A stretch of DNA of 64,000 bases from the NCBI RefSeq assembly GCF_964204645.1, contig NC_134033.1:14082655-14146654 (forward strand). The letters are read 5' to 3'. Of the stretch, positions 8,775-18,734 are shown piece by piece. Each line of letters begins with the position of its first letter. Position 1 is the first letter of the stretch. The notes under the pieces were generated by a model that worked only from the letters and a program-made list of their open reading frames with translations, did not search any database and was not told the origin of the DNA. The DNA is from Tubulanus polymorphus (Eukaryota > Animalia > Nemertea). Both the position numbers and the translations under genes were made by a program.

Positions 8775-10198
8775 CTATTTTCCGAAGCCGGGAGGCATTC
8801 GCCCGAATGTGGGTGTGAATGCGGGGTTCCCTAAAACCAAGAAAAAAATCAATGCTAGAATTATGAATAAAGTCAACAATTTAAAAATAGGGTTAGGAGT
8901 TATATTGACATTGTTGTGACGTCGACAGGGAGCGAATCATTGTAAAATTCATATTCAAAGTATTCTTACATTTTCCATTACGCTCGTTTTCACCTAAGAA
9001 AAAAAAACAATTAAAGCTTTTCATAAGATATCTTTAATTCAATTTGCATTGTGTCTACAATTTTTTTTTCGTTGATCGTAAATAAAAAGGCTGCTAAAAT
9101 CAAATTCCAACTGATCTGGATTCGAACCCAAAACGCGAAGATCTAACGGATCAGACCTCGGCAAGATTGCATTGAAAAGTGGCGGCCCTTTCAATAAGAT
9201 TACCGCAAAAGGCAGATGTTCTACTGACTATCAGTAAGTTTTATTTACCTGATGTGCTTTCGTTCTCATCGCGGTTCTTATCTTTGTCCTCAACTGAGAA
9301 TAAAGAAACAGCGGCGTTTAAGCAATTTAAGAATTTTAACAACCTTTCAGTAACTGCCTCCAGCACTCTCGATCCACGCGGGGATTGATCGGGTCGCAAA
9401 CGTTTTAGGCCATAGAGCCCTTTTTCAAATGAGGAAATATAGGTCGCATTGACAAAAACAGTTTCGGTTCTATGTTATGGCCTAGGTTGCATGATTTGAA
9501 ATCTGTTATTTTTTGCCATTTTAAGGAGAAATTCGACGGATACAATGTGGTCCCATTACTTCAAAAATATGTGGTCCTATTTCTTAATTTTTTTCGAATT
9601 TGATCGTCTAAGTCGCAGCTCTCGAATCAAGAGTACGTGTAAATACCAATATTCTACGGCGACGACGCGAAATGAACACCTGAAGGTCATGTAGTCTGTG
9701 TGTATTGATTACTATAAGGAGTAATCATTAATCGCTCGCGTTATTCAAACACTGAACGCGCTGTATAGATTATTGAGTGAGATTCTGACATAGATTTCAA
9801 ATTGATTTGAGTTCTATAATTCTGATCAGCAGTGCCTTCATAAATCGATCTGGCGGAAGCCTCTTTTCTTGGAGCAATGATTACTCCAAGCTCATATATG
9901 TAGCTATGCAACAACCATTCCTAAAACATTCGACTTTTTCTTTCACAAGTCGTGCATCGTGTATTAAAAGTCCAATAGATTTGTTTTGGCCTGACTAGTA
10001 CGATTTATGCGAGGTTGAGTGCGCTAGTGTCGCAACAGTTCTAACGCTGTAAGGCGTCCTGTCGAATTGACGTTTGAGCGATATGCTTATTAGGTAGATC
10101 TAAAGTAACCCACCATCAGCATTAATTTCTCTTATTGTTATGACGCAGATCATACCGAGTAAGAAACACAGCGCAAACAGACGATTTTGCGTGAACAT
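8775..10198 (-). CDS. Small secreted peptide precursor A (69 aa), predicted C-terminal GRMPPGF-amide
   Basis: Coding exons 10198-10114, 9293-9249, 8993-8970, 8830-8775, all GT-AG and phase 1. Translation MFTQNRLFALCFLLGMICVITIREINADVEDKDKNRDENESTSGENERNGKWNPAFTPTFGRMPPGFGK*. A non-coding first exon ends at 10354 (aag|gtaagt). Splice sites and frame are conserved with the paralog at 17378-18474. Confidence 0.82.
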
Positions 10199-11943
10199 CT
10201 GAAAGAAAAGGGGAAAACGGAAAGAGCTATTTTACTTATTGAGAAAGTATTTCTCAATATTGTTCCTATAATTCTGAATCCAAGATGATGAATAAAAACA
10301 GGCTGTGACATAATGTACACATCCATCGAAAAAGCGGAGATAACGCCACTTACCTTGGTTAAGTAGAAATTTATTCGTCCGTTTCGGTATATGTATTTTC
10401 TTCGCGCGAACGTGGAGCAATTTTCGTTTCTGAAGTGCCAACGGGCAATGCGCGCTATACACACGCGTAACATTAATCGCTTCGAGATCTCTGGAACCTT
10501 TGATCAATAATCGCAAAAGTAGATGCAGATTGTGTGAAGGCCCGAGTTTGATAATGATAATAATAATAATTATAATTATAATAGTAATAATAATAATAGT
10601 TATCTTTATTTACATTGAAATTATAACATAATATAACACTTAGAGTTTCTAAAGATTAGTTTACCGTCGGCTGCAGGGGAATAGCAGCATGCGGTGTGAA
10701 TTGATTACCTGTTAACGACTGTCTGATGTCACTTTATCAAGTGAAAGTTGAATCAAATATTTCGGCTTTGGTGTAACACATGCAAAGCTTAGAACCAACT
10801 CGTCCCTTCCACTGGACGCTAGATTCGCCGGGAGTCGGTTTCAGATGTAGAAAATGCCTTCGTTAAAAGAATGAAAGCCCATCTTATATGCGTAGCTTTA
10901 AATTCGGGGAAGGTTTTTCGAAATAAATTTCAATGAAATCAACCGTTGAATGCTACGGGTAATGTGGAATTAACTGTGCTAATATCAACGAGTACCCAAA
11001 AACGCGGAGCCTGAAAACTGCTTACTCAGCCTTTTTACATTTCCATGCTTGAACTCAACATCTGTACATAATAAATTGTATTCTCTGATAGGTAACGACC
11101 CGGTAACGACGATCGTCATTAGCCTACATCTCGACGATTTCATGAATTCAATCCTTACTGACAGATGCGGCTTTAGATTTAATTAAAATGCATAAAGATG
11201 ACGCCACGAGCAACGATAACGATAAACAATCATTGTTGTTTATGGTGTCACAATCATAGGTGTATGCAAAGCTAAATTTCACATACGTGTAATCCTGTTC
11301 AGATCATTTGATTTAAATTAAATATATTGTGACCGACAAATGCGGCTTTAGATCTGACTAAATAAGCACGAATAAAGTGACGAGAATTGATTATGCAAAA
11401 CTGTTATCATAATTGTAACTGTCTCTATTTCCAAGCCATAAAAACGGTTAGTAATAGCAAAAATTCATAGTCTTTATGAATTTCTGGTAATAGTAATAGT
11501 ACCCATAGGGTAAAAATCCCCTTAGTTAAAATTCCTCAGGTAAAAAATTCCCCAATTCTTCAAAGTAGGTAAAATAAATTTTGAATGGAGTGTAAGTAAA
11601 TACAATCTAAAAGTAAATTTATTTATATCATTGATACATATATCAAATTTATTCATATTATTCTGTGGATCACCATATCGATATCATAGAATAGAATAGA
11701 ATATATTTTCATTGATCATTAGCATACAACCTATAGTATATAGTATAATTTGAATTAAGTATTTTAATTTGCATTTTTAAATTCATTGAACGCCTTTCAT
11801 TAAGAACTTCTAAACTCCAGGATTGTATGAATTGTTTTCTAAATGAAGTTACTAAACTTAAATCACAAACATAGATCCTTTCGATATTATTTCTGAAAAA
11901 CCTAATTTAACTGTCTGGTATTATATTATCTGATATCGGTGTT

Positions 11944-12173
11944 ATATATATATATATATATATATATATATATATATATATATATATATATATATATATA
12001 TATATATATATATATATATATATATATATATATATATATATATATATATATATATATATATATATATATATATATATATATATATATATATATATATATA
12101 TATATATATATATATATATATATATATATATATATATATATATATATATATATATATATATATATATATATAT
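11944..12173. repeat. (TA)n microsatellite, ~230 bp
   Basis: Pure TA run. Confidence 0.99.
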
Positions 12174-13220
12174 TTGTATATTATATTTCTTTGTACGCGG
12201 ATATATCCACCATAAAGGTTGACTAAGATAACACGAATGACTTTGGTGATGATTAAATAAATAGAATTAAAAAATCAATGATGATGAAAAAAAAATGAAA
12301 ACATACAACAAATTGACACTTCATTTGATACTAAATTAGTACTTAAAGTGATCGCACAGCTTAATGAAAGGGTTCATCGCACATTTAAAATATATTACAC
12401 TAGCTTGAATGTAAAATATTTCAAACTAAAATGTCATTATTTCTTACAATTCGTGGCATCGCACGGCCCAAATATACCACAAGTTAACAAAAATTCGAAA
12501 TATTATTCCAGTTCGAATTTTAATATTTTACAAATATAAAGTTCATCATTAAATTCTAAATCGTTATACCGGGAATTTCGTATTAACGTGATCGTACTAA
12601 GCAAAGCCAGGAATTAAATTCATCGTATTACCGAGGTTTTCGTTGTTAGCCGAATCGTACTGACTGAGGTTTGACTGTATAAATAAAACGAGTAACATGC
12701 CGTGAACCCGCGCAAAATTGAGCCGGAAATTACATATTGAATGGAGGGAAAATTCGCGACAGTTACAGGTGTCACAATTTGTCACAATTTCACCTATAGT
12801 CGTTGCGCAATATTCAATCTATATTTCATATAACTCAAATGAAAATTCGGCTTTAGATTTGGTTAAATATCATAAATGAAGCGACGAAAAATATCAACGC
12901 AAAACTATTTCTATCACAGGTGTCACAATCATGAGCCTGGTGAAGCTTCTATACATTAGCAGCGAGAGCCCGTGCGTCAAAATGAATAGTTTACCTATAT
13001 ATATATATACACGAACCCCCGATATATCGCCCTCCCATTTACCGCCACCCCCGCCTATCGAAACGTACTCAGTTGTGAGTATTCAAACTGCGTATTTATC
13101 GACGAAGTGATGGTACTCGGCACATCTATCCAAGGGTACACTCAATTTTGGGTACCGTACTTGCCTAAACTATGGTAAGGCTAAGTGTGCCCGCAAAAAG
13201 AAAATGGCGGCTATGACTTG

Positions 13221-17377: not shown

Positions 17378-18474
17378 TTATTTTCCGAAACCGGGAGGCA
17401 GACGACCGTATTGGGCTATGAATTCGGGTTCACCTAAAACCAACGAAAAATCAATGCTTGAGTTACGAATAAACGCAAATACATAATTTACAAAACAATT
17501 TAAAAATAGGGTATGGAGTTATAGTGACATTATTGTGACGTCGACAGGGAGCGAATTATTTAATAGTTCGCGTATCCAAATCATAATTTCATATTAAAAG
17601 CATTCTTACCTTTTGTTTTACACACGATTTCACCTAAAAAAAAAGACAATAACCAAAAACAGCTTTAATTGAATATCTATAATTCTACGAATAGTGATTT
17701 GCATTGTGTCTACAGTTTGGAAATGAAATGACCGCAAAAGATTGAATAGAAATGTCAACTGATTTGGATTCGAACCCATGAAGTGAAGCCCGGCTAGATT
17801 GTTCGGCTATTTTGATTAAACCCTTTTTTATTAAGATCACTTTGGTTCGGTTAGGTTTGGTATTCATTTACCTGTCTTTTTGTTCACTTTACAGTTCTTA
17901 ACTTTGTCTGCTGAAAAAAAGAAACAGCGGCGTTTGAGCATTCAAGCATTATACAACGACCTTTCAGTAACTGCCTCCAGCAATACCCCTTGTCATCTAA
18001 AACGCTGGTTAATTATAGGGGTAGGGGCGCCCATTTTGGGCCGCAGCACACTTTTTAAAATGTTTTCAAAATATTACACAATTTGCCCAGTATGAAAACA
18101 ATTTATTCTTATATAACGTAAATATTTCAGGGACTAGGCCTCCGCTATAGCCTAGGTTGCTCGTTAAGTTATTATAATTTGAATTCTAGTGGAATTTACC
18201 CCTTGAGAGAAATTGGAAGACCACCCTACCCCCATTAAGAAATCCTGAGGACGCCCACTAAAGAACCTTTCAACAACCTCGCAACAGTTGATACAGATAA
18301 CCTCGACATTCACTAACGCCGTAAAGCGCCCTCTACTGTCGAAGTACATTTGAGCAATGCGTTTAGGTAGATCTAAAGTAACCCACCTTCAGCGGCATGA
18401 ACTTCACTTATTGTAATGACGCAGATCATACCGAGTAAGAAACACACCGCGAACAGACGATTCTGCGTGAACAT
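17378..18474 (-). CDS. Small secreted peptide precursor B (68 aa), one Cys pair, predicted C-terminal GRLPPGF-amide
   Basis: Coding exons 18474-18387, 17910-17872, 17633-17610, 17433-17378, all GT-AG and phase 1. Translation MFTQNRLFAVCFLLGMICVITISEVHAAEADKVKNCKVNKKTGEIVCKTKGEPEFIAQYGRLPPGFGK*. A non-coding first exon ends at 18628. TATA at 18726-18734 and AATAAA (minus) at 17196-17201. Confidence 0.85.
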
Positions 18475-18725
18475 CTGAAAGAAAAAGGGAATTAAATGGA
18501 AAGAGCGATTATACTTATTGAGAAAGTATTTCTCAATATTGTTCCTGTAATGCTGAATCCGAGATGATACACAAAAACAGACTGAGACGTAATGTACACA
18601 TCCATTAAGAAAGCAAACACAACTTACCTTGTTTATAAAGTAGAAATTTATTCGTCCGTTTCCGTGGATTTTCTTCTCAAACGCGGAGCAATTTTGTTTC
18701 TGAAATGTCAACGGGCAATGCGCGC

Positions 18726-18734
18726 TATATATAA
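18726..18734 (-). promoter_or_regulatory. TATA box of peptide gene B
   Basis: TTATATATA on minus, ~100 bp upstream of the first-exon donor at 18628. The aligned site in copy A (~10456) reads tatacacacg on plus, so it is degenerate. Confidence 0.55.

Follow-up and report, generated by a model that had tools for sequence, protein, structure and literature searches.

What is encoded by the two small, intron-split genes, referred to here as A and B, that lie in tandem on the minus strand at positions 8775-18734 of a 64,000-nucleotide stretch from the genome of the palaeonemertean ribbon worm Tubulanus polymorphus (Nemertea)? The stretch (hereafter the window, to which all positions refer) covers positions 14,082,655 to 14,146,654 of contig NC_134033.1 in assembly GCF_964204645.1. 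From their structure, their divergence and a series of database searches, we propose that these are lineage-restricted, unannotated genes, each most likely encoding a secretory prepropeptide of ~69 aa. The pattern of substitution between them suggests that the pair quite probably represents functional coding genes, or did so until recently. The reading we favour, with about even confidence, is that they are orphan precursors whose amidated peptide serves in signalling, in the manner of a neuropeptide or peptide hormone.

Gene A comprises four coding exons totalling 210 nt, which join into a frame of 69 aa, and gene B four coding exons totalling 207 nt, which join into a frame of 68 aa. Coding exon 1 of A (10114..10198; 85 nt), in which the ATG is the first base past the acceptor, specifies a predicted signal peptide, as does its 88-nt counterpart in B (18387..18474). 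Coding exon 2 is 45 nt long in A (9249..9293), where it encodes an acidic spacer and shows 69% identity to B; in B it is 39 nt long (17872..17910), basic, and includes Cys36. Coding exon 3 is 24 nt long in both genes, with a product ending ...NGK in A (8970..8993) and ...KTK in B (17610..17633), the latter also including Cys47. The last coding part is 56 nt long including the stop codon, and encodes the 16-residue WNPAFTPTFGRMPPGF followed by Gly-Lys and a TAG stop in A (8775..8830), and GEPEFIAQYGRLPPGF followed by Gly-Lys and a TAA stop in B (17378..17433), where an AATAAA overlaps the stop codon. Splice borders are GT-AG throughout, with a T-rich tract before each acceptor AG and the donors GTGGGT, GTAAAT and GTAAGA. 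All three coding introns of both genes are in phase 1, and the two internal exons are therefore symmetric (phase 1 on both sides).

A first-pass annotation of the window, made by reading the letters, had proposed this architecture, and its exon coordinates and six junctions could all be reproduced from the window sequence for both genes. Its account of GT-AG borders and phase-1 coding introns likewise holds for each copy, the C-terminal strings of both products are exactly as it gave them, and the insertions and deletions do preserve the frame (exon length differences of -3, +6, 0 and 0 nt for A versus B). The remark that only the signal exon of B had surfaced among the open reading frames (ORFs), by accident, also proved sound: this exon falls within a fortuitous stop-free frame of 112 aa at 18373-18711. 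With respect to the proposed five-exon layout, the four coding exons are exact, and the non-coding exon is a prediction for which there are two candidates, described below. The label "micro-exon gene" was overstated, as each gene possesses only two small symmetric exons; in genes properly so called, many micro-exons together account for the bulk of the coding sequence. We also observed a tandem CAGCAG acceptor at 17908-17913, at coding exon 2 of gene B, where use of the second AG would remove one codon (Ala) and keep the frame.

Both predicted products begin MFTQNRLFA... and display the n-h-c organisation of a signal peptide, comprising an n-region with Arg6 in A, a hydrophobic core of 16 residues (7-22 in A) with a mean Kyte-Doolittle hydropathy of 2.88 (the remainder of the protein averages -0.8 to -1.8), and a c-region with Ala at -1 and Ile or Val at -3, which in A ends ...INA before D. 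Both C-termini read (F/Y)GR(M/L)PPGF-Gly-Lys-stop. The codons for Gly and Lys are conserved amid synonymous changes in the codons nearby. A C-terminal Gly-Lys is a classic amidation signal, processed through trimming by a carboxypeptidase E-type enzyme and subsequently by peptidylglycine alpha-amidating monooxygenase (PAM); the signal that had been noted in the first reading is present in both copies, directly before the stop codon. The 16-mers of the last exon are rich in Pro and have net charges close to zero (+1 and -1), which sets them apart from cationic antimicrobial peptides. Both precursors possess a Lys where exons 3 and 4 meet, with an Arg at -3 in A and in a KTK context in B. Monobasic cleavage, with another basic residue located 3-6 positions before the site, has been documented by mass spectrometry in nemerteans (PMC8557429), and the Lys at the exon 3/4 boundary, which has a further basic residue close upstream, is a candidate site of this kind.

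The claim that the two genes lie in paralogous segments of ~2 kb was borne out by BLASTN and MAFFT, which revealed colinear similarity between 10828-8700 and 19055-17306 (segments A, ~8700-10830, and B, ~17300-19055). BLASTN aligned the segments at 84% identity over 459 nt, spanning the promoter, 5' untranslated region (5'UTR), intron 1 and signal exon, and at 79% over 189 nt of intron 4 and the last exon, in addition to smaller blocks. From the MAFFT alignment, identity is highest for the signal exon (91%), followed by the aligned part of intron 4 (88%), intron 1 (84%), the 5'UTR/promoter block (82%), the last coding part (76%), the small exons (69-71%), and introns 2 and 3 (61-66%, with many indels). 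Of 68 aligned positions in the two products, 42 are identical. Searching the 268-Mb T. polymorphus genome (77 contigs) at the DNA level with the 5' and 3' blocks located exactly two loci, and a profile of the signal exon scored 91 and 85 bits at both loci and <=21 bits elsewhere. The same two loci only were recovered by scanning the genome for the G-R-x-P-P-G-F-G codon pattern. One further PPGFGK-stop site, on another contig (C8, position 6561484), was rejected: it lacks an acceptor, the Gly-Arg and any DNA homology, and a stop codon lies 20 codons upstream; ~0.25 such sites are expected by chance. Closer examination of contigs assembled from DNA runs also showed that, within 18406-18511 (signal exon and intron 1 of B), 9/9 variants and a 3-nt deletion match gene A, compared to 7/20 variants outside this interval. 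These A-like variants may reflect either a segregating gene-conversion tract or the merging of paralogs by the assembler, and the contigs fit both.

Evidence for coding function comes from the distribution of differences between A and B. At an overall synonymous divergence (dS) of ~0.28, both copies retain the start codon, the stop codon, the frame and all splice dinucleotides. In a simulation of 41 random substitutions, start, stop and open frame were left intact in 7% of trials. The ratio of nonsynonymous to synonymous divergence (dN/dS) is ~1.2 in the middle but drops to 0.33 in the signal peptide and to 0.18 in the last ten codons, where the five differences comprise three synonymous changes, one Met/Leu exchange and one TAG/TAA exchange. 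An equally mild outcome arose in 1% of trials when five random substitutions were placed in these ten codons, and nonsynonymous and synonymous counts differ between the constrained and free parts (Fisher P=0.017). Purifying selection on the C-terminal peptide alongside a freer spacer is thus what the comparison reveals (0.18 vs ~1.2; simulation P=0.01). Taken together, the substitution pattern and the three tests argue for selection on a translated product, specifically on its signal peptide and C-terminal motif.

Upstream of the coding exons, two sequence blocks conserved between the genes are plausible candidates for the non-coding first exon. The first is a putative 5'UTR exon of ~78 nt in A (10354..10431, minus strand), conserved in B (18628..18701, minus strand). 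A TATA motif is located at 10459-10456 in A and 18729-18726 in B, with TCAG at an appropriate distance, 28 nt downstream, in both; the putative 5'UTR stretch (74-78 nt) is free of upstream ATGs in each copy, its predicted donor is AAG|GTAAGT in both, and the ATG forms the first triplet of the following exon, with A at -3. The second candidate is a block further upstream (10699..10828 in A; 18883..19055 in B, both minus strand), which could represent either a first exon used alternatively, with CAG|GTAATC at its end, or an enhancer. Because this block occurs nowhere else in the genome than at these two genes, it forms part of the gene and is no repeat. A cAMP-response-element-like (CRE-like) octamer, TGACATCA, lies within the block of gene A at 10731-10724, and another, CGACGTCA, occurs on the minus strand at 8917..8924, in an intron 4 block with 88% conservation between A and B (B counterpart ~17545-17552). 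Judged by sequence, these conserved octamers would suit a regulated secretory gene.

Several repeat-derived features were also identified in these regions. The upstream block of gene B is interrupted at ~18942-19075 by an insertion that contains a short inverted-repeat element (19021-18984 versus 18978-19015); its word depth of 2000-8700 in the DNA runs identifies 18942-19075 as a high-copy repeat, possibly a miniature inverted-repeat transposable element. In addition, a motif resembling a tRNA B-box, GGTTCGAATCC, is found in intron 3 of both genes (9118-9128; ~17766-17776), with a third copy downstream of B at ~16984-16994. ARAGORN found no tRNA, and the copies are probably remnants of a tRNA-derived short interspersed nuclear element that predates the duplication.

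Searches beyond the window were directed at both expression and relatives. Among the sequencing runs that match 8775-18734, three span the introns and were for this reason classed as DNA, and one, a T. polymorphus run from 2015, is RNA-like (word share 0.00). Among 1.84 billion representative proteins, no true relative of the products was identified with a profile built from both signal exons. The sole match, to a 2734-aa protein of Peronospora effusa (UIZ24173.1; E=1.5e-50), was rejected as an artefact in which each repeat weakly matches query positions 1-12 and the scores add up. UIZ24173.1 itself seems to be a model in which ~28 tandem small genes, each encoding a Gly-rich secreted protein with its own signal peptide, have been wrongly joined. 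When the 112-aa frame that encloses the signal exon of B was compared by words with 5.8 billion proteins, no candidate emerged; Pfam searches with every exon piece gave nothing meaningful, and neither product is present in the nemertean toxin catalogue. Full-text literature searches found no peptide of the PPGFamide, PPGFGK or RMPPGF kind. That the first reading did not recognise the motif as a named family is in keeping with these results, as the motif matched no family that could be compared.

A number of observations weigh against the proposal of a signalling-peptide precursor. The RNA-like run yielded no contig over 17200-19200 (gene B), and the DNA runs yielded unspliced contigs only. Given that a fully assembled transcript of either gene would have an estimated word share of ~0.02, compared to the 0.00 observed, neither gene was probably expressed to an appreciable degree in the sample of the 2015 run. 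The products are missing from public protein collections that include the NCBI annotation of T. polymorphus, and neither is listed among the precursors that Thiel et al. 2021 derived from a T. polymorphus transcriptome; that dozens of precursors were recovered there without this one speaks against a brain neuropeptide in particular. Neither precursor contains a dibasic cleavage site, and none of the residues 3-6 positions before the conserved Gly-Arg site is basic. Further, conservation was measured between two paralogs of one species, and gene conversion, on the ambiguous contig evidence above, could account for some of the similarity between the signal exons.

If the genes are expressed, we envisage the following route from precursor to ligand. 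The signal peptide would direct the product into the secretory pathway and probably be cut off after Ala27, exposing a spacer, derived from the two small symmetric exons, that would carry no conserved information; the last exon would supply the active part of the precursor. Cleavage after the Lys at the exon 3/4 boundary would release the whole last-exon peptide, and a carboxypeptidase would take off the terminal Lys, allowing PAM to turn the exposed Gly into a C-terminal Phe-amide. The resulting 16-residue peptides would end (F/Y)GR(M/L)PPGF-NH2. A further cut at the conserved Gly-Arg may give the pentapeptides MPPGF-NH2 and LPPGF-NH2, together with an N-terminal ...F/Y-amide fragment. The peptide would then most likely diffuse to a receptor and act on it as a neuropeptide or peptide hormone does. 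What the sequences and searches establish is the gene structure, the paralogy, the pattern of selection and the lack of database entries; transcription of the pair, its processing sites, amidation and signalling role are what we infer. A free spacer followed by a short, constrained and amidated end is the design of a neuropeptide or hormone precursor.

The same sequences could be viewed as encoding exocrine peptides, secreted by gland cells for defence, venom, mucus or antimicrobial purposes and diversifying under positive selection, although we regard this as unlikely. A conserved signal exon ahead of a variable mature part is a classic toxin-gene pattern, and here the signal exon is 91% identical compared to 69-76% for the other coding exons; the pro-region moves from a charge of -2 in A to +4 in B, which also has two Cys, and the first 9 codons of the last exon carry 9.5 nonsynonymous versus 0.5 synonymous differences. 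A tandem duplicate with symmetric small exons would also be in character, and silence in an unchallenged adult transcriptome would suit an inducible gene. However, the middle of the protein is approximately neutral (dN/dS 1.2), diverging no faster than introns 2 and 3 (61-66% identity), and the Arg/Cys differences correspond to C-to-T changes at CpG (CGT vs TGT, and CGC vs TGT with a second, third-position change), which fits mutational drift. C-to-T at CpG is the commonest type of mutation, and because both Arg/Cys switches are of this type and lie in a neutral spacer, we favour a signalling peptide over a toxin. Furthermore, constraint on the mature part is confined to a short C-terminal motif that bears the amidation signal and lacks a Cys framework, the 16-mers are neither cationic nor amphipathic, and a strongly expressed mucus toxin would be expected in the anterior-body transcriptome, yet is absent from it, as it is from the catalogue of nemertean toxins.

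It is also improbable, to a similar degree, that the pair is non-functional today, being untranscribed, recently silenced, or kept alike by gene conversion instead of selection. The runs examined gave no RNA support, no annotated protein exists, each test of selection is modest when taken singly (P between 0.01 and 0.07), and the A-like variants in gene B contigs at 18406-18511 hint at sequence exchange. Against this stand the start, the stop, all eight splice dinucleotide pairs, the frame and the in-frame indels, kept at a dS of 0.28, as well as conserved promoter and 5'UTR features; moreover, gene conversion erases differences and would not place them at the synonymous sites of the last ten codons. 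A very improbable alternative is that the genes are divergent members of a named family, such as allatotropin, APGWamide/RGWamide, a SIFamide-type peptide or a bradykinin-like kinin. The x-P-G-aromatic-amide ending is reminiscent of APGWamide, the arrangement R-hydrophobic-x-x-G-F-amide recalls spiralian allatotropins (e.g. scallop ...RIGHGFamide), and the frog bradykinin-related peptide RLPPGFTPWR opens with RLPPGF. The pair nevertheless lacks the defining features of allatotropin, APGWamide/RGWamide and bradykinin-related peptides and has no Pfam match, and kinins require a C-terminal (S/T)PFR half.

Returning to a precursor for an amidated signalling peptide, expression of the pair might reveal a previously unknown, ribbon-worm-restricted xPPGF-amide system with its own receptor, a prospect that we rate at somewhat below even. 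Transcriptome-based catalogues would on this account miss the pair because the precursor is tiny, single-copy, devoid of dibasic sites and split over micro-exons. As a much less likely variant, the R(L/M)PPGF ending may serve as a defensive mimic acting on the kinin systems of predators. Peptide signalling in Nemertea has been mapped almost wholly from transcriptomes and homology, and the pair illustrates how very small precursors that hold one peptide copy and are divided among symmetric small exons can slip past gene annotation as well as neuropeptide searches that rely on motifs. If expressed, the pair would add an orphan family of amidated peptides to the neuropeptide and secretory repertoire of the phylum. 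The two 16-mers and two pentapeptide amides provide synthetic candidates for receptor screens. No general principle would be changed, as the machinery and precursor design are already known.

Elsewhere in the window, an intronless ORF of 310 aa with a Methyltransf_23 domain is located between the two peptide genes (13749-14681, plus strand). Its best public relatives are three T. polymorphus proteins, with 65% identity to LOC141910066, and one of the three is encoded at 100% identity elsewhere in the genome; LOC141910066 has at least 46 matches across the genome, many locally clustered. Exact look-up of four long window ORFs, including this one, found none of them in the public protein collection. 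An ORF of 441 aa (50036-51361, minus strand) has a C-terminal half consisting of ~22 copies of the 7-residue QQGVPVQ (21-nt period) and no Pfam match. Another, of 304 aa (25068-25982, minus strand), has several predicted hydrophobic segments, a Gly/Ser/Pro-rich tail and a single, sub-threshold Pfam match (HAAS_TM). Also identified were a 64-nt tandem repeat at 34796-36228 (22.4 copies, 97% matches) and a dispersed family of tandem arrays with a period of 39-42 nt and related units (...GGATCCAG...CCACA...), found at 33688-34033, 39708-39914, 42627-42813, 43638-43915, 53856-54015 and 61974-62046, with one array of this family lying inside an ORF of 206 aa.

Comparison with known peptide systems places the PPGF pair more precisely. 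Bradykinin-related peptides (RPPGFSPFR; frog RLPPGFTPWR, PMC4379535) share the string R-(L)-P-P-G-F, a six-residue, low-complexity resemblance, but the pair ends at a predicted amidated Phe, without the (S/T)PFR half or a free C-terminal Arg, and the precursor type is unrelated. The Nematostella RPamide FPPGFHRPamide (PMC6756747, PMC11087051) is likewise an amidated peptide containing PPGF and is derived from a small precursor; its PPGF is internal instead of C-terminal, it belongs to another phylum, and the precursors show no similarity. Spiralian allatotropins conform to (G/S)F(K/R)...GHG(F/Y)-amide, located immediately behind the signal peptide and a KR site, with GKR and a long C-terminal tail thereafter; nemertean allatotropin is a 12-mer that likewise comes straight after the signal peptide and a KR site and has a long tail behind it (PMC8557429 supplement). 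In the pair, by contrast, the predicted peptide lies at the very end of the precursor, does not begin with GF(K/R), and carries PPGF instead of GHGF. Precursors of the APGWamide/RGWamide family encode many peptide copies, contain a pair of C-terminal Cys separated by 20-30 residues, and have one phase-0 intron (PMC8557429); a short x-P/G-G-aromatic ending, predicted to be amidated in the pair, is common to both, whereas the pair has a single F-amide peptide, no Cys in A and three phase-1 coding introns.

With regard to gene structure, schistosome micro-exon genes (MEGs) contain short symmetric exons (3-81 bp) between introns (10.1101/2023.06.21.545858). The pair resembles them in its predicted secreted product and in possessing short symmetric internal exons, skippable in frame, between conventional flanking coding exons. 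It differs in having two small internal exons, which in A make up 69/210 nt, or 33%, of the coding sequence. The phylum also differs, and no homology to MEG proteins was found with Pfam on the exon pieces or among the 1.84 billion representative proteins. A nearer parallel is provided by NKY, a bona fide neuropeptide precursor of T. polymorphus itself that ends ...RYGK (PMC8557429 supplement). NKY is transcribed and catalogued, whereas the PPGF pair is uncatalogued and gave no transcript in the runs examined; there is no sequence similarity between them, and the pair ends in a predicted PPGF-amide compared to RY-amide, is without a dibasic site before the peptide, and is much shorter. Both, however, are small precursors of the same species that combine a signal peptide, an unconserved spacer and a single C-terminal peptide with Gly and a basic residue before the stop. 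In design, the PPGF genes come closest to single-copy spiralian precursors whose amidated peptide lies at the C-terminus, as in NKY.

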